From Adineta vaga (taxonomy: Eukaryota > Animalia > Rotifera): DNA of 64,000 nt. Shown in pieces: positions 2,217 to 39,050 of this stretch. Made by a program: the position numbers and the translations under genes. A model generated the notes under the pieces. It did not search any database. It had not been told where the DNA came from and saw nothing but the letters and a program-made list of their open reading frames with translations. Position 1 is the stretch's first letter. Each line of letters opens with the position of its first letter. Location: the NCBI GenBank assembly GCA_021613535.1, contig CP075496.1, positions 12,586,001 to 12,650,000 of the forward strand, written 5' to 3'.

Positions 2217-4540
2217 TCAATCATCATCCAAATTCTCGTCAATCAACAAGAGATCTACAAAGTTCTGAATTAGTTGCCATATGATATCTAAAAATTACAT
2301 CATATACTTCAAGGAGGTTTAAATTAGTACCATAACATCGATGGAGAAATCTTCTACAGACTACTTATAACTATTATTACATAATCAATGTTGATTGGAT
2401 CTTTACTTTTCTTTTTCTTTCAATTAGGTTTTATTAAAGAATCAGACGATGATGCTTATTTGTGACTGATATCAATAGTAAAAGTCTTTCGTCGTATTCA
2501 CTTACGTTTCCATTCGTCTACGCTATATTCTGCATTTTGATGTTCGTCAATTATTTGGCCTCTAGATGGTTCATCCATGGGATCATGGTATTCAGATAGA
2601 AAAGGATGAGCTAGAAAGATAGATATTTTATGTAAAAAAAAGCATAAGCTTAAGTGATTAATACTGTTGAGATAGATTACCTAGAGCTTCTTCAGCGCTT
2701 GGACGTTGACGATGATCAAAAGATAGAAGACGTCGAAGGAGATCAACACCTACAATGAAGTCAAATGAATGAATGAGTGAAGAAGATAAAAGAATTGTAT
2801 GTGATCGATTTACCGTCTGGTGAAACACCAGATGTTGGATTTGCATTGCCTTCAGTATATTTGTAGCCAAAGAGTTGGTTAAAATCTTGTGGTGATCGAG
2901 GTGCTATTTGTCGAATATACGCTGCTGCATCTAAAAAACATTTCGATATATTAATATAGTGTTGGTACTTGATAGTTTGAAATAAAATACTCTATCAATT
3001 AATTGAAAAGTAAGCAATGATCAAGCGAATCCAACTTCAAAAACTATCTCTGAGATTTATCAAACTCGACTCTAGATTGTTTTCAAATTCAAAATATTCG
3101 ATTGGTTTGTATGTTGTCTACCAACCTGGTGCACATATATCATCTATTGTTGTTAGATCAGGTGTACCAATAATATCAAATATTTTATCTAATTGATCGG
3201 TATGGTCTACTCCACAGAAAAGCGTTTTATGTACGATCAATTCAGCCATTATGCAACCGACAGACCATACGTCTAATTTATTATTACATTGTGTTTCGTT
3301 GGTAAAAGTTTCTGGTGCATCCCAAATTCTAATCAAAGGAACATTTCATATGTTTAAAAGTCAAAATTTAACTATTAATATACCTAGCAGAAAAATCTTC
3401 AGATATAACATGACGAAATGAAAAATTAACTGAGACATTTGTAGCGATCTGAATTAAAATAATAGAGTATAGAAATAACAAATTACTACAAAAATAAGTT
3501 CAAAATCTTATTTGTACTTTGATCATGTTCATCTTTTCGTTTCATAATAATCATATAATCAATGATTCCTACGCAATAGAATCTCATTGAACAATGTAAA
3601 TTATTATGAAATAAAAGAGATCACTGTAGAATGACTATATATCTTAGAGTAATTTGTAATACTTACTGTGATATTTCCATTCTTATCTATTCTAACATTT
3701 TTTGGTGTCAGATCCTATTTCAATCATAAGACATGTAAGTTCATGTATATCTTTATTTCTGTGTTACACTTACACGATGAATAATACCCGCTGAATGAAT
3801 AAACTAAATAGGAACGAAACCAAATAGAATTTTAGCACATACAGCTGATCCTATTCACAATAGATTCATACTTTTAAACCGCGAAGTAGTTGATAGATTA
3901 TTAGTTTGACATGTTCTTCAGTAAATGCAGTACATTCAAAAGCTTCATGTAAATTATAATCAACATAATTCAATACAAAATATCTAGAAGGTAGTTACAG
4001 AAATATTAACATTATAATTATACGAAATTCCTTCTAAAAAGAAAAACATACAATGTTTGAAAATTGTTTACATCTTGTTCCGGTGTGAAGACATTGTATA
4101 ATTGCATGACCTATGATCGAACGAAGTAGTACATTGTATCATAATATGACAAGAAAGTGTAGGATTACAAACTTGCACATCTGGATAGTTGAGATCCATC
4201 AGAAGTTTAAGCTCCTGATAAGCTCGTTTTGCATGGATTGTATCTTGAAATGGGCGACGTATATTTTTAATTGCGACATGTCTACCTGTTTTCTAAATTA
4301 TAATACAATAGTATTTACTTATAGAGATATTTATAATCATCTATACTGTATCTAACGCATGACTAAAAAGATAAATGTACTTATACAAAAAGGAAAAAAA
4401 GATATTTGAACTTACAGAACAATACCAAAAGCGCCTTGTCCTATTGGCTGTAGATCTTGATATCGGATAGGTAATGTGAATGAATGATTATCATAGATAG
4501 CTGTATGCCACCGGGTTTGATTTGAAGAAGGAACAGTCAT
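2217..4540 (-). CDS. p38-like MAP kinase paralog A, predicted pseudokinase
   Basis: Spliced model: MTVPSS..LPIRYQDLQPIGQGAFGIV, VAIKNIRRPF, HAKRAYQELKLL, VMQLYNVFTPE, FIHSAGIIHRDLTPKN, IATNVSVNFSFRHVISEDFSAR, IWDAPE, DVWSVGCIMAEL, AHPFLSEYHDPMDEP, IIWQLIQNF..DDD*. All introns are GT-AG and the frame stays open. No DFG or TGY motif. Confidence 0.88.
2677..2894. repeat. Near-identical tract, copy 1 (shared with 5526-5743)
   Basis: About 218 bp with only 3 mismatches seen against 5526-5743, including an identical intron. Confidence 0.9.
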
Positions 4541-5173: not shown

Positions 5174-7235
5174 TTATTGTTGATTATCATTATTTTCGTT
5201 AGCCCAAGCTGGTTCCACGAAATTATGAATTAGTTGCCAGATGATACCTAGAATAATATGAATGATTTTAATCGAACTCTAAACAGTACTCTTATCTGTT
5301 GATTCTGAATCCATCAGAGAGAAGGGAGATAGTGTCAACTATGTTTCACTCACGTTTCCATCCCAATATGTCATGTTCCGCGTCTCCGTGTTCATCAACT
5401 ATTGAATTTCGAGCTGGTTCATCATCTGGATCATGAAATTCGGCCAAAAACGGGTGAGCTAAAGAGATATAGTAAAATACGTTATGATAATGATTGAAAA
5501 GGATGACTAATAATATTAAGATAACTTACCTAAAGCTTCTTCAGCGCTTGGACGTTGACGATGATCAAAAGATAGAAGACGTCGAAGGAGATCAACACCT
5601 ACAATGAAGTCAAATGAATGAATGAGTGAAGAAGATAAAAGAATTGTATGTGATCGATTTACCGTCTGGCGACACACCAGATGTTGGATTTGCATTGCCT
5701 TCAGTATATTTGTAGCCAAAGAGTTGGTTAAAATCTTGTGGTGGTTGAGCTGGTATTTTTCGAATATACGCTGCTATTTCTAGAAATACAATATACACAT
5801 TAAGTGTCGACTAACAGATGTAGCTGTGATTCCAGCAACTTCTTCTCTAATCTTTTACTGAAATGTGTGAGTAAAATCTCAAATAATATTAATTTCGTAT
5901 TCATGCTATAAATTTAGTTTGCACATTATCTACCAACCTGGTGTACAAATCTCATCTATTGTTGTTAGATCAGGTGTACCAATAATATCAAATATTTTAT
6001 TTAATTGATCAGTATGATCTTGTCCACGAAAAATTGGGCTGCGTACAATTAATTCTCCCAGTATACAACCAATTGACCATGTATCAAGTTTTTCATTATA
6101 TCGTTCCCAATTGATAAACACCTCCGGTGCACGCCACCATCTAACAAAGAATAAAACTAACAGATATGTAAATTCTTCCAATAATTTGACAAATTTCTCG
6201 TATGAAAATTAATCTGCATCCATTTGTTTTACAATGCGAAAGTTAAAAAATTAATAGCATACCTTGCTTGAACGTAGCCTGTGTTAACACCGTTTGCTAA
6301 AACACGAGACAAGCCAAGATCTAAAATCTATTCAAAACAAATAGAAATAAAACTTATATTTTTTCATTTACCATAACATTTGACTCGCGATCAATTCCAA
6401 TATTTGTTGGTTTTAGATCCTATTTCAATAATATGAAATATATGATTTCATTCATATGTATCCTTTCGAATTATACATACACGATGAATAACACCAGCTG
6501 AATGCATAAACTAAAGTCGAACATTATGAAAAGTATTGCAAATACGACATGACTATTGACAAGAATTTCCTACTTTTAAACCACGAAGTAATGAATAAAT
6601 AATTTGTTTGATGTGGTCTTCAGTAAATGCATTAGATCGAATAACTCGATGTAAATCATAATCAGCATAATTCAATACCATATAACTGAAATATAATCAG
6701 AAAAAAAACAAGTGTTACTCGAACAATACAAAAATTCTCTATAAAAAACATACAATGTTTGAAAACTGTCAATATCTGATTCCGGTGTGAAGACATTGAG
6801 TATTTGCTAACTACATTAAGAAGAAGTCGATAGGAAGTTGAAAGACTCTAGGAGAATGTATATTTATATACCTGTGCATCAGGATGATTGAGATCTATCA
6901 GAAGTTTAAGTTCCCGATAAGCTCGTTTTGCATGGAGTGGATGTCGAAATGGTTGGAGTAATTTTTTGATAGCGACATATTTACCTGTGTTCTAAATTAG
7001 AATATATTAATATTTACTTATGGAGACATTTACAGTCATTCCTACTGTATCTGTCACACGACTAAAAATAACAATGTAATTATACAAAAATGAGAAAAGA
7101 TATTTGAACTTACATAACGAGACCAAAAGCACCTTGTCCAAGTGGCTCTGGATTTTGGTATCGTGTAGGTAGAGTAAATGAATGATTATCAAGGATAAAT
7201 GTATACAATCCTGTTTGATTTGTATTCGCAGCCAT
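5174..7235 (-). CDS. p38-like MAP kinase paralog B (TGY activation motif)
   Basis: Spliced model: MAANTN..LPTRYQNPEPLGQGAFGLV, VAIKKLLQPF, HAKRAYRELKLL, FMHSAGVIHRDLKPTN, ILDLGLSR..NTGYVQARWWRAPE, DTWSIGCILGEL, AHPFLAEFHDPDDEP, stop at 5174-5176. Same exon structure as paralog A. Confidence 0.9.
5526..5743. repeat. Near-identical tract, copy 2 (shared with 2677-2894)
   Basis: Direct comparison of the two MAPK paralogs. Confidence 0.9.
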
Positions 7236-11012: not shown

Positions 11013-13771
11013 CTATCTCGATGATGAATCCATTCGACGAGTACCACTGTTCGACGAATAAAGTTGAATCCATGCATCGAGTGACTGTTGACACACCTGA
11101 GGACGTTTTCCTAAAGAATAATATTATATGATAATTGTTCTTTCAATAAATATCAAGAAAAAATAATCATTTCCGACTTACCAACTTTTTGTTTAGCTAC
11201 TAATAGACCATTACTTGTAAAACCACAATCGAGCCATTGATGAAGTATTGCTTGTTCATGTCCAATCTACGATGAATATTTCTTATTTTTATCTTTTCAA
11301 TAAAATTAATTTTCATACTTCAGATGATGTAAGAAAATGAACGGGTAAAAGATTTCCATCACAATCCATCAATGGATGATAGAAAATTTGTTGATCATTA
11401 TTATCATTTTGTGGTTGAGTTATTAATGAAGATGATGATGACGATGGTGGACGTTGTTGAGTATCATTATCATGATTGAGAATTAAAGGTGATGATGAAC
11501 GTGATGATGATGAAGACGAGATATTAATACGTTCTTGCATAGGTACAAGAGCTGAAAAATGATTTCGAGTAAAACCGAGACATATCGGTGATTTTGAACA
11601 AAAATTCGTTTCCCAAAGTAATGGTAAATAGACACCTTGAAATCGAGCAAGACCAATAAAATATTCTCCACGATAGGATTTAACATTCGTTACACCATAG
11701 ACAATGATTGGTCGACGAAGTATATGTGACAATGCGAATATATGTGCATGTCCTAGACTTTCACCAGGTTGATTTGCAAATGTTAATACATCATTCCAAT
11801 CACTACGTAATTGATGTTCATCTTGTCGATATTGTTGTTTTTCAGCTACTAATCGTTCATATTCACTCCATCTTTCGAAAAATCTATTTCAATAAAAACA
11901 AAAATTAGAAAAAGAAACAAAGCTTCTATCGTTTGTCTTACTTATTTGAACCATTTTGTAGACATTCAGCCATGGCTCGACGTAATGTATTCTCTGTATC
12001 CCATACCCCTAGACAAACTTGTAGAACACTATCTAATAAACAATCACCATTCTTTCGATTCCATAATGCATATAAACGAGAATGAAATCGAGTGGTTACT
12101 TCACTATTCCAATTAATAATTCGATTGTCAATTTCAAGTTCTAGAAACAAAAAATAAAGGTAATAATAGAATTCAGTATGAATAATTATACCTTGTTGAA
12201 CTTGTTGATCAAGAATATCATCAAATATTTGTTGTTGTGTTCGATGAGAAAAATCACGAATTTCTAAATAAATGATGTTCAAACAGATTTATTTCTTTGA
12301 GAAAAGCTCACCTGCTGGTAGTACAGCTGTAAACCATTCTGTTAAAAAATAGGATTGAAAATCAGTAATTTTCTTTAATTTTAAGTGACTATGAAAAAAA
12401 TGTTGAATCATTCCATTAATTCGATTACAAATATTTGCTGGCACACGTCGTGGATGTGGAAGTTTCTTTTGTTGTCTCATTAATTGTTGAAATGCACTTT
12501 CAAATTTACAAAATTGTTCTATTTGTCCAGTTATATTTGCTAAATTTTTCAATGTACGTCCAACAAGATCAATTGATGAGAGATATGAACAACTAAGAAA
12601 TTGACTATCTTCAATAGTAATCTGTCGTGTTGGATCTCCACCACAAATTAAATATTCAAATACAATTGTTAATGAACCATGATCAAGTAATGTTTGACAA
12701 GCTTTTAACCACAAACGATCTGATGATGTTGAGGAAGTTTTTTTTTGATTTGATATAATACGTTTGTCTCCACTAAGACGATTATGTTTACTTTCTTTAT
12801 TAGATATTCTTTCAACATTGATATTTTCCATTGATTTATTAATAGCATTCATACGTTGTTCTTCATGAGTACCGATTAATATCGATGAACATGTGGATGA
12901 TGATGTTGATGTTGATGAACATGTCGGTGGTGTTGGAATAGGTGGATTTAAATTATTATTAGTATTATTATTATAACGTGAATTTCCACATGATATACAT
13001 TTTTTTGTTGCTGGATAATCTATAATAAATCAAATAATTTATATAAACGAAAGACAATCGAAGAAAAGAAGAAAAGAAATCTATCCTTTGTTGTTTACAT
13101 GACCTTGATCTTTAAGAGTTCGACGTGTTTTTATTGGCAAGGACGTTTTTTTATTCTATTAGATTATCTATTATTTTCTCATTTAATGGAGATTTCCAAG
13201 TTTGAATTATGAATAAAATGAAAATGGAATTCTTACTATCAGTTGTACATCGACTACAAGTCCATTTTCTTAAACGTTGAGCAATACGACGTGAATCAGT
13301 TATTGATGGTGGTGGTGAAATTCGTTCATTTATATTCGTATCGATAGATGGTTGAACAGGTGATACACGTGATATAGCAATTAAACGATATGATCCACAT
13401 TGAGTACAACGTACTGCTCGTGGATAATTAAGAAATGTACATTGATCACATGGCCATTTTTCAACTGAATCAATATATGTTGCTGGTATTTGTTGTTGAG
13501 CTTGTTCTTGTTGGGTATTCGATTCAGATGATGCATTTAATTGATAAATATCCGCTGAAGCTGCATTTATTGTTGATATTTTTGCTTGTCGACACATGGT
13601 ACATTTTTGTGCTACAGCAAAGTTTAAATATGTACATACTGAACAAACCCATTTATCTTCAATTATAGGCGTTGTTGCCATTGTATTCGAAGAATTTTTC
13701 TCCAAATCTTCATTTCGATGTTCAAAATCATCGATGGACGAATCGTCATCATCATCAATTGGATTATTCAT
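11013..13771 (-). CDS. ZRANB1: Ubiquitin thioesterase ZRANB1/TRABID (3 NZF fingers, AnkUBD, OTU domain)
   Basis: NZF fingers WVCSVCTYLN..KCTMC, WPCDQCTFLN..RCTQC and WTCSRCTTDN..KCISC. AnkUBD-like YLICGGDPTRQIT..VGRTL. OTU catalytic motifs RLYALWNRKNGDCLLDS, HILRRPIIVYGV, GVYLPLLWE and NHFSALVPM. Stop TAG at 11013-11015. Confidence 0.95.
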
Positions 13772-14532
13772 CTGATAAAAACAAGAAAAAAACAAAACAT
13801 CACGTTAGTAAACAGGTAAATATATCAATCAATTAAATAAATATATTTATATATATATATCTTGATAGATATATAAATATATTTTCATTTATTTACTGTG
13901 AATATATTTGTTGTTATTGTTCCAATATGAACATTGATACCAATAAAAACAATTGCTCATCGAAATTGAAAATTGAACAATAGAAACAAAAAATATATAT
14001 ATGTAAGTTTTTATTTTTATTTTCTAACGATTTGAGAATAAATATCTAAAAATAATCAATAAATTTTATTTTCTTGAATGTAATTCAAACCAATGATGAC
14101 GGCAACAGAAAAGTCACCTGCTTTCCTTCGTGCCTCGCTCGTTCTTGCAGCTACGTCTTCCTTTTCTTCCTGTTGCTTTTTCTTGCTCTGCGTCTATTTG
14201 TCTGCTTGGTTACTACGAATGAATATAATCAACCAATCGAATTCATCAACAAATCCTCTACAGATATATTATGCGAAAAAATAACTTTTTTCGTTCAAAA
14301 GAAAAACTATATTCTCAAGTATTTGAAATAAAAATTGCTCGTGTTTTCTTCATAATTAACAATGATTTTTAAGTTTTTTGTTGTTTTTTTTAACTGTTTC
14401 TTTTCTTTTTATAACAGATCAATACAAAACACACACATTAACAAAAACAAACGTAACATGTACGATTGATGATGATGTGACTTTGTTTGATGGAAATAAA
14501 CCGATGACTTTTTTTTGCGTTTTTCATTTATT

Positions 14533-25239: not shown

Positions 25240-28200
25240 TTAATGCCTAGAGAAGATAAAGAATAGAATTGACTTGTTGAATAAATAATTAAAAACTTAC
25301 ATGTCTAATGGAACTATTTCAATTTCTTCGATTTCATTTTCTTTTTCTGATGAAGATGTATCAAGTGTACTAGTAGAATCTCGTGATGGCGACCGTGGAG
25401 ATTGATGAACATGTTGTTTTACTTGAGTTGTACGATGTATGACTGTTGATGAATGTTTATTCAAAATTGGTGCATTGATTTGAGATTGATGGGCATAACG
25501 TGTAGTTTCTTCGATTTGAGCACTAAGATCTAATGCAGCTTTCAATGCGAGATTATCACTACTTCTGACATGTTGAAGAATATCATTGGGTAATTGATCA
25601 ACAATGACAGGTTCAGGATATTTATTCTCAGCATCAGATGTTTTTGATGGAATTGGAATATCCGTTGGTTCAGTTGGTTCTGCATATTCAATACTAAATT
25701 GACAACCATTTAGACTAGGAATTTGGCTGTAATGCAGTAAATGCGAAGAAAAAGTTTATTTTCAAGATTTTTATTCTTACTTGAGCATATTACGAAGATT
25801 GACTTCACTCAATTCTGGTATATCTAATGCTGATGCTGGTCGAAACATTTCTGTGAAAGAAGGTGCCGTATGTGGCCTTGGTATAATATTATCAGGTACA
25901 CGTAGCGAATTATTGTTGTTATTATTAACAGACGTTGGTGATTTGCCATTACCCAAATCGAAATTAATTGGCATAAAACTATTTGGAGTAAAACGGTGTA
26001 CCTGGTTATTGTATACATTTGGTACTACAATGAAGAAAAATAAATTATACATTAGTAATGATATTAATTAATTGAAAAACTAGATAGAGAACGAACGAAG
26101 AAAGAAAGTAGTCATATAGACAAATTAATTAACCTGATGATAGTGGACTGCTAGCCAATGAAGAACTTATATTTCGAATAGGCGAACGATGTCTATTAAT
26201 GGCTGCTGCTTGTATATTTCTAATTGGAATCGGAGCCAATGGACCTGAATGTCCTGGTCGATTATTACTATTTGGTATGAACATATCAGGCGAACGATTC
26301 ATAGAAATAGGTCGACTTGTCGGATGAGCTCGTGGCGGACGTGGAACTACCGGTGGAAGATATGCAGCGGTTTGACTTTTGTCCTGAGTTTGTTGCATCT
26401 GTTGTTGCTGCTGTAGCTGTTGCTGTTGTTGTTGAAATCGTTGCTGTAATTCTTGTTGTTTTTGTTGATGCTGTTGTTGCAATAGTTGACGATATCTTTG
26501 TTGTTCTTGCTCTAATTGCGCCTGTTGATGTTCAATTTGTTGTTGTTTTTGTTGCAATAGTTGCCAATATTTCTGCTGTTGTTGATGTATTTGTTGTTGC
26601 TCTTGCTGCAACTGTTGTTCTTTCGCTTGTTGTCTTTGTTGTTGCTCTACCAGCATTTGTTGCTGTTTTTGTTGTTGTTCTATCAACGATTGCTGTTGTT
26701 TTGCCTGTTGCTCTATTAGCGCTTGTTGTTTTTGTCGTTGCTGAAGTAAGAGAAACTCCTGTTGTAGTCTCTGTTGTGGTTTTTGTGGCACCTGAGACTG
26801 TTGTTTCTGTGGTTGCTGTGGTTGTGTTTGCTGTTGCTGTGGCTGTTGTTGTGGCTGCTGTTGCTGCTGCTGCTGTGGCTGTGACTGTTGTTGTGACTGT
26901 TGCTTTTGTGGCTGTTGCTTTTGTGCCTGTGGCTGTGGCTGTTGTTGTGGTTTTTGTTGCGTTTGCAGTTGCTTTTGTTTTTGCTGTGATTGTAGTTGTT
27001 GCAGTTGTTGTTTTTGATGCTGTTGTACTTGCTGTTGATGCTTTTGATGTAACGGCGCTTGCTGTGGCGGCGTTTGTTGCTGCGGCGGCTTTTGTTGTTG
27101 TTGTTGTTGTTTTTGATTTACCGGCGTCTGTTTGTTTTGAGATGGTAACTGACTGTGCGGTCTCTGTAACTGAGCCTGTGTCTGTTGTTGCTTTTGTTGC
27201 GGCTGAACTTGCGGTTGTTGCTGTGGTTTTTGTTGTTGTTGTTGTTGTTGTTGTGTTTGTACTTGCTGTTGTTTTGGTTGTTGCTGCTGCTGCTGTTGTT
27301 GTTGTTTTTGCTGAAGCTGCTGCTTTTGTTGCATTTGTAATTGCTGTTGTTTATTTTGCACTTGTTGTGTAGCTTGTTGTTGTGGTTTTTGTTGTTGCTG
27401 AAACTTTTGCTGCTGTAGTGTTTGAATTTGTTTTTGCTGTTGTTGCACTGCTTGTTGCAGCTGTGATTGTGACTTTTGCAGCGTCTGTTGCGTCACCTGT
27501 TGTTGTTGTTGTTGTTGTTGCTGCTGCTTCGGTTGCGATAACTGTGGCTGAGGTGATAATCCTTGTTTTCGCTGTTGCTGTTGAGTTTGAAGCAATTGCT
27601 GATGTTGTAATTGTTGTTGCTTTTGTTGCTGAAGCTGCAACTGCTGCTGTTGCTGCTGTTGCGGTTGCTGCTGTTGTTGTGGCTGTTGCTGTTGTTGTGG
27701 CTGCTGTTGTTGTACCTGTGCCTGTAGATGTTGTTGTGGCTGCTGTTGTTGTACCTGTGCCTGTAGATGTTGTTGCTGCTGCTGCGGATTCTGCAACTGT
27801 TGTTGTTTCTGTTGTTGCTGTTGTTGTTGAATGAGTTGCTGTTGTTGTTGTTGTTGTTGCTGTTGTTGCTGTTGCTGTTGCTGTTGCTGTTGTTGAATGA
27901 GTTGTTGCTGTTGTTGCTGTTGAATGAGCTGTTGTTGCTGCTGTTGCTGTTGAATGAGTTGTTGTTGTTGCTGTTGAATGAGTTGTTGCTGCTGAAGAAA
28001 TTGTCGTTGTATCGATTGTAGAGTTTGTTGCTGCTGTGATGGAGCTGGAAATCGAAGACTTGGACGATTAAGTGCATGTCCAGATGATGTAGTCTGAAGA
28101 GTGAATGGTTGCTGTTGTTGTGGTGTTGGTAGTCTAATTGGCGCTTGTAGAATATGGGGATGCATAGATTCATTGAGAAAATTCAAAATGATTGGATCTT

Positions 28201-38300: not shown

Positions 38301-39050
38301 TAATCATATGTATTATAAGTACTTGCTTCACAAAAGAACACTTCAGGTGCCATCCTAAACAAAATAGAAACAATTTAAAAAAATAAATGAGAACATTGTA
38401 TTTTTAATCAATCGAAAGCTAATATTTGTTTCTAGATCATACCAATAAACAGTTCCAATATATTCATTTCTCTTCTGATCTTGTTGTGTATTCTTTGCTG
38501 AGACACCAAAATCAGCCAATTTAACTTGTCCAGTTTGTGTGAGAAGTATATTACTTGCTTTAACATCTCGATGTATAACAAATTGTTGAGTATGTAAATA
38601 ATCTAATGCTTCTAATATTTCATAACCAATAAAACGTATTTGTTTTTCATCTAATCCATGTTCAAGTGTTGTCATAATATGATCAACTGCTCCATATGTA
38701 CAATATTCGAGAAAAATATATAAATTTTTCTCATAATAATAAGCATCATAAAGTCCAATAATATTTACATGATCACAATCAGATAAAATATTGATTTCAA
38801 CTGTATGTTCAGGTAACTCATCATCAGTACAATCTTCGATAACTTTCGCTGCAGCATATTGTTTAGTTTGATCATGATATGCTTGATAAACTTTTCCAAA
38901 TGCTCCATCACCTAATTCTTTGATTAATTTCCATTCATTTAATGGTGATTGTTCTTTATAAAGACGATTCTTTTTCACCGATGAATTCTTGTTTGATAAG
39001 AATTCGTCACCACTCTGTGTACCAAAGATATTTTTCAGTCGTTTCAACAT
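32356..39050 (-). CDS. SLK: STE20-like serine/threonine kinase (SLK/STK10/Slik family)
   Basis: [67 protein letters not shown]. A long Pro/Ser/Thr linker, then RRTIRTTRRFV..DG....VTTKIV and a C-terminal coiled coil ending ELEERFVRETLKQKDFYF..LN* (stop 32356-32358). Confidence 0.93.

Follow-up and report, generated by a model that had tools for sequence, protein, structure and literature searches.

The window, a stretch of 64,000 nucleotides of the Adineta vaga genome, carries two p38 genes in tandem on its minus strand, and one of them, gene B, is probably a catalytically dead p38 pseudokinase, as judged from its sequence and that of its ortholog. Our preferred reading, which we hold with moderate confidence, is that gene B is functional and works through its docking surface, binding D-motif proteins without MKK control and holding or scaffolding them. 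The features on which the argument draws are as follows.

2217-4540, minus strand: gene B, putative p38 pseudokinase, I4U23_021173 / UJR33746.1, Adineta vaga, 379 aa
4540-4416, 4362-4347, 4292-4173, 4110-4052, 3983-3872, 3803-3774 and 3714-3667, minus strand: gene B exons 1-7
3448-3384, 3328-3126, 2930-2814, 2749-2681, 2610-2506 and 2287-2217, minus strand: gene B exons 8-13
4173-4540, minus strand: exons 1-3; Gly-rich loop, VAIK Lys and alphaC Glu kept, R70 changed to Gln
3872-3983, minus strand: exon 5; hinge and alphaD-alphaE part of the docking groove, with conserved B-lineage-specific residues
3667-3803, minus strand: exons 6-7; catalytic loop HRD-L-T (K152T) and beta7-beta8 turn of the docking groove
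3384-3448, minus strand: exon 8, 65 nt; degenerate DFG and activation segment, SED at 3403-3395, R173 changed to Asn, no Tyr
2685-2894, minus strand: tract near-identical to gene A, in runs of 136 and 70 nt that include the whole of intron 10
2506-2610, minus strand: exon 12; CD docking motif YHDPMDEP, the same in the A. ricciae ortholog
5174-7235, minus strand: gene A, tandem paralog, I4U23_021174 / UJR33747.1; HRDLK, DLG and TGY; spliced in two studies; predicted active

Structure and transcript support of gene B

Rebuilt from these coordinates, gene B consists of 13 exons and 379 codons with no internal stop, and all 12 introns are of the GT-AG type; its last exon (2287-2217) is missing from the NCBI model. 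Gene A (7235-5174) has the same exon structure. The rebuilt models agree with what the initial annotation had read from the letters: exon 8 is 65 nt in both paralogs (3448-3384 and 6327-6263) and translates as first noted; gene B has HRDLT, IWDAPE, the Gly loop, VAIK, the alphaC Glu and YHDPMDEP; and it has neither stops nor frameshifts, with its splice sites kept. The DNA of exon 8 is only 40% identical between genes A and B, compared with 65-99% for the other exons of equal length.

Splicing of the altered exon, which had been proposed as a check, was seen in contigs of run X1, whose RNA nature is a guess, albeit a likely one, and which give neither level nor strand. These contigs lack the introns, and the joints 3667/3448 and 3384/3328 lie together on one contig of 763 nt. 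Because both joints occur in a single intron-free contig, the altered 65-nt exon is the exon that is spliced in gene B. Spliced contigs were found in one study for gene B and in two for gene A. The use of an alternative exon that encodes DFG and TGY had been raised as an objection to the pseudokinase reading; a scan of all minus-strand frames from exon 7 to exon 9 (3720-3126) gave neither D[FLY]G nor T[GEP]Y, and together with the spliced contigs it rules such an exon out. Gene B has no entry in those portions of the supplementary expression tables that we searched for stress values, the identifiers of which may not match the NCBI tags.

Within gene B, the X1 contigs and the assembly disagree at 4446, 2554 and 2229, with P32R, an Ile-to-Leu change in exon 12 and one silent change. 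These differences, none of which is a stop, probably represent a second allele.

Predicted loss of catalysis in gene B and its ortholog

A. ricciae has the same gene order, comprising an OTU gene, kinase A, kinase B, a small gene and topoisomerase I, on both alleles and in two assemblies. In A. vaga the OTU-domain gene lies upstream of the p38 pair at about 11300-14300 on the minus strand, syntenic with its A. ricciae counterpart. A. ricciae B clusters with A. vaga B with a support of 100/99, has a 65-nt exon 8 and is open and intact in both alleles, so that disabling mutations in close relatives, which the initial annotation had named as a sign of a young pseudogene, are not found in this ortholog; the comparison of gene B orthologs comprises two species.

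A pseudokinase is defined bioinformatically as a kinase fold that lacks at least one of the VAIK Lys, HRD Asp and DFG Asp (PMC4718504). Gene B falls within this definition by its PF00069 match (159 bits), its motifs and its structure model. Its subfamily is p38, as it is nested among bdelloid p38s and its closest relatives in both sequence and fold are p38s. The catalytic triad is incomplete in both species, the DFG Asp being gone from A. vaga B and the HRD Asp from A. ricciae B, with the Lys present; both are thus pseudokinases by the standard definition (PMC4718504), through partly different lesions, as is expected if their ancestor had already lost catalysis. A. ricciae B reads HYGLT in place of HRDLK, and the HYG lies at a clean splice junction in both alleles. 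At the DFG site the A. ricciae alleles read DFV and NFV, compared with NVS in A. vaga, where no Asp remains, and the codons suggest that the old DFG slid by one residue in the B lineage. The initial annotation had placed the change at TNV; the loss of the Asp stands, and the exact site is less certain, since the old DFG may lie one codon later, at NVS. K152T and the loss of the P+1 pocket are common to all B copies. The dual phosphorylation motif TGY, the target of MKKs, is absent from B as had been noted, being replaced by SED in A. vaga and by ACN or AFN in A. ricciae; of the changes to be looked for in an ortholog, A. ricciae B shares K152T but not SED. Since the A. ricciae ortholog also lacks the HRD Asp, selection on gene B is not for catalysis.

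Selection on gene B

We estimated dN/dS with a pairwise codon model between A. vaga and A. ricciae. Gene B gave 0.18-0.19 at a dS of about 1.3 (p < 1e-24 for omega = 1), gene A 0.17-0.19 and the canonical p38 gene (gene C) 0.04; between the two A. ricciae alleles of B the ratio was 0.25. Exon 8 of gene B is less constrained, at 0.46-0.55 versus 0.17 for the rest of the gene (p = 3e-4 and 2e-3), and exon 8 of genes A and C is under a constraint equal to that on the rest of the gene or stronger. Overall purifying selection with a faster loop exon is what the initial annotation had expected from a per-exon test. The active genes and p38alpha share 102 invariant positions. Every B copy is altered at 15 of them, of which 12 belong to the activation segment or the catalytic loop (p = 1e-6); judged by the positions affected, residue loss in B is targeted and is not general decay.

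Signs of a pseudogene, namely frame breaks, lost splicing or a dN/dS near 1, were looked for in gene B and none was seen. Given the intact syntenic ortholog with both alleles open and a dN/dS of 0.18-0.19 over a dS of about 1.3, we conclude that gene B is not a pseudogene, a status that the spliced contigs also speak against.

Positive selection on exon 8 was considered and rejected. The A-versus-B dN/dS of this exon is 3.5 in A. vaga, a value that rests on a dS lowered by conversion elsewhere, and 1.1 in A. ricciae; because the A. ricciae pair gives only 1.1, relaxation suffices.

Docking surface and predicted fold

We compared 23 positions that we take to be the docking contacts of p38alpha complexes, mapped by alignment across a one-residue indel. 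Between the species, gene B is identical at 22/23 and 21/23 of them versus 66-68% elsewhere (p = 0.001 and 0.013), a contrast that involves small counts and that A/B conversion may inflate by lowering the background identity. Gene A has no excess identity at these 23 positions between the species. In addition, the groove region, 39 of 321 positions, contains 9 of the 23 conserved substitutions specific to B (p = 5e-4), and the CD motif YHDPMDE is identical in B of both species. The retained docking site had been put forward as a means to scaffold or compete, and the conservation of the groove and CD site at 21-22 of 23 positions is consistent with such a role.

Structure prediction, also suggested at the outset, gave a confident p38 fold for gene B, with a mean pLDDT of 88.9 and a TM score of 0.82-0.87 to p38alpha; the model matches p38alpha structures that include complexes with MKK3b and MEF2A docking peptides. 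The docking groove and the CD site are kept in B, as are Lys53, Glu71 and the greater part of the Gly loop (p38alpha numbering is alignment-based and unreliable before about residue 50).

The sequence shows that copy B no longer has the Mg-binding Asp, the catalytic-loop Lys or TGY; the P+1 pocket is gone as well, together with some of the phosphate-binding arginines, but the fold, Lys53 and Glu71, the docking groove and the CD site have been kept. We propose that such a protein would not be switched by MKK dual phosphorylation, and its effect would thus be set by its amount. It could bind D-motif proteins such as MKK3/6, MAPK phosphatases, MK2-type kinases or transcription factors, and by holding or scaffolding these clients it would tune the output of active p38. 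ATP binding may persist in a structural role, and the SED letters would represent incidental drift in a relaxed loop. Of the initial idea of a dead, MKK-independent p38 acting as a scaffold or competitor, what survives is a gene that is intact, spliced and under selection with its docking site kept; the phospho-mimic part does not.

Alternative explanations

That phospho-mimic part held that SED imitates doubly phosphorylated TGY, locks the active shape and traps phosphatases or substrates that read activated p38. The letters are as first read, and two acids do occupy the Gly and Tyr positions in A. vaga B; the Thr position, however, holds Ser, which is no acid, and the ortholog has ACN or AFN instead. 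The residues that hold the phosphates of active p38alpha are Arg67, Arg70, Lys66, Arg149 and Arg173 for pThr180, and Arg186 and Arg189 for pTyr182 (PMC6141180). R67, R149 and R186 remain in A. vaga B, but 3 of the 6 arginines are replaced, one of them by Asp (R70Q, R173N and R189D); in A. ricciae B the replacements are R149Y, R173N and R189D. The segment is also encoded by the most relaxed exon of the gene, with its dN/dS of 0.46-0.55 against 0.17 elsewhere, and residues 175-190 are the only internal part of the model with low confidence (pLDDT < 50), which is weak evidence by itself since this loop is sparsely covered in the model alignment. With the acids not conserved and the arginine pocket broken, phospho-mimicry was rejected as a conserved function, and we regard the decoy as most improbable. 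Hardly better placed, and very unlikely in our judgment, is a pseudogene in slow decay, with conversion from gene A keeping its frame open. Conversion-like A/B tracts do occur in A. vaga; yet B groups with A. ricciae B and the two share 24 lineage-specific residues that are absent from A, A. ricciae shows a dN/dS of 0.25 between its B alleles without any long A/B tract, and no frame break has arisen over a dS of 1.3.

Purifying selection on the whole fold and the retention of Lys53 and Glu71 would also be expected of an allosteric partner that contacts an active kinase (gene A, the C1 p38 or an MKK) directly instead of holding D-motif proteins. STRAD acts on LKB1 by direct contact in this way, and the tandem linkage of B with A has been kept in two species. 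The linkage, though, is explained by the tandem-copy origin, the excess conservation maps to the docking groove and evidence for a dimer was not found, which makes such a partner improbable. We consider it quite unlikely that B is an atypical, CASK-like, Mg-independent kinase, constitutive because loop phosphorylation is not needed. The Gly loop, VAIK, Glu71, HRD and Asn155 are all still present in A. vaga B, and precedents exist in CASK, active without a DFG Asp (PMC4718504), and in p38c, active without TGY (PMC4177744); against this stand the missing HRD Asp in both A. ricciae alleles and, in all B copies, K152T and the lost P+1 pocket. A similarly low probability attaches to an immune decoy, in which a docking-competent dead p38 absorbs pathogen effectors aimed at MAPKs. 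The bdelloid p38 family is expanded and degenerate copies recur in it, but no positive selection was seen on the surface, the groove is conserved and not fast-evolving, and searches of the supplements yielded no infection expression values. The reading that we prefer remains that of a protein acting through its docking surface.

Proposed history of the p38 genes

A genome search of A. vaga found four p38 genes of this type: A, B, a canonical gene on C1 and a degenerate gene on C3. The other strong MAPK matches in the genome are JNK, ERK and NLK. The C3 gene, gene D (I4U23_015828, C3 about 15,336,700-15,338,500; L040:3730-5538), is a second p38 pseudokinase by its motifs, with an altered Gly loop, the alphaC Glu changed to Lys, HRD changed to HCR and no TGY. 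Its clade (98/94) also contains an A. ricciae protein and degenerate proteins of Rotaria. A single origin of the B and C3-type pseudokinases was rejected by an AU test (p = 0.002), run on a quick LG+G4 tree of 24 rows with the group named after earlier trees were known. Gene D thus looks independently derived, and two of the four A. vaga p38 genes look dead. Bdelloid p38 proteins in the databases often have altered catalytic or TGY motifs, and further single Rotaria p38 proteins look degenerate; since faulty gene models or recent pseudogene formation may explain these, the count of 7 changes on the tree is an upper guide and two lineages the safe number.

The C1 locus is collinear with the A/B locus on both sides, on which basis A and B would represent a tandem-duplicated homoeolog of the canonical C1 gene. 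The C4 locus would accordingly be the homoeolog of the C1 locus with its canonical p38, and the tandem duplication on C4 would predate the split of A. vaga and A. ricciae. Identical A/B runs of 136, 70 and 49 nt (2685-2894 versus 5534-5743, and 3140-3188 versus 5952-6000), together with several exons that have few synonymous differences despite many amino-acid ones, point to repeated gene conversion between A and B in A. vaga as the probable cause, with an assembly artefact as an alternative. No long identical tract was found in the A/B comparison of A. ricciae.

Gene A had been described as an active paralog. HRDLK and TGY are present; activity is predicted only, and the motif in exon 8 (6327-6263) is DLG, not DFG. 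The A. ricciae ortholog has DFG but APD for APE. At intron 3 / exon 4 (6872-6806), exon 4 begins with 5 additional letters in contigs of two studies and so reaches the usual 59 nt, and the only in-frame version in the assembly is two codons shorter; the discrepancy reflects either another allele or an assembly error. In the NCBI model of gene A, the 16-nt exon 2 is followed by 4 further residues that are absent from the contigs.

Comparison with known systems

MAPK pseudokinases are known in yeast (Kdx1) and TGY-less p38 in flies, and duplicate-derived pseudokinases are common in general. Among solved structures p38alpha (MAPK14) is the best sequence match to gene B (E = 1e-75), and the likeness extends to the fold, Lys53, Glu71 and the CD site; the differences are the missing DFG Asp and TGY, K152T, R70Q/R173N/R189D and a C-lobe insert of about 12 residues that is common to the other aligned bdelloid p38s. 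Yeast Kdx1/Mlp1, a paralog of the MAPK Slt2, is likewise a dead stress-MAPK duplicate with a non-catalytic, probably scaffolding role; it is without the Lys of subdomain II and an Asp of subdomain VIb, and its T-loop must still be phosphorylated by Mkk1/2 (PMC3983003). Gene B, by contrast, is an animal p38 that keeps the Lys and has no loop Tyr in either species, and with its phosphate-binding arginines lost, activation of the T-loop by an MKK as in Kdx1 is not predicted. Drosophila p38c, a lineage-specific p38 duplicate with TDH in place of TGY, phosphorylates ATF2 in vitro (PMC4177744), but the DFG Asp is also missing from B, as is the HRD Asp from its A. ricciae ortholog. CASK's CaM-kinase domain resembles B in lacking the DFG Asp with the Gly loop and beta3 Lys intact, and it is weakly active (PMC4718504); it belongs to another kinase group, and the B ortholog lacks the catalytic base.

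Our search of published work returned no paper on bdelloid p38 pseudokinases, and no animal p38 in the literature searched has lost both catalysis and its activation switch with its docking surface under selection. Gene B offers a natural test of docking-only functions of p38, and this change has taken place two or more times within a stress-tolerant animal group. It is a tentative possibility that bdelloids repeatedly made p38 duplicates into kinase-dead, MKK-independent docking proteins, each with its own partner specificity, that tune p38 stress signalling, for example in desiccation and rehydration. If so, bdelloids would have a docking-only p38 layer for which the literature searched holds no description in animal p38 pathways.

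Other features of the window and genome

Four JNK-like genes lie within about 110 kb on C4 (14,561,500-14,669,000; L049-L052), two of them with TPY read directly. In the window, 26001-28000 is anomalous in composition (GC 0.42, GC skew 0.35, AT skew -0.53) and has matches in the C1 homoeologous region; it is probably a low-complexity coding stretch. A further protein kinase match, distant from p38, lies at 38439-38939 on the minus strand.
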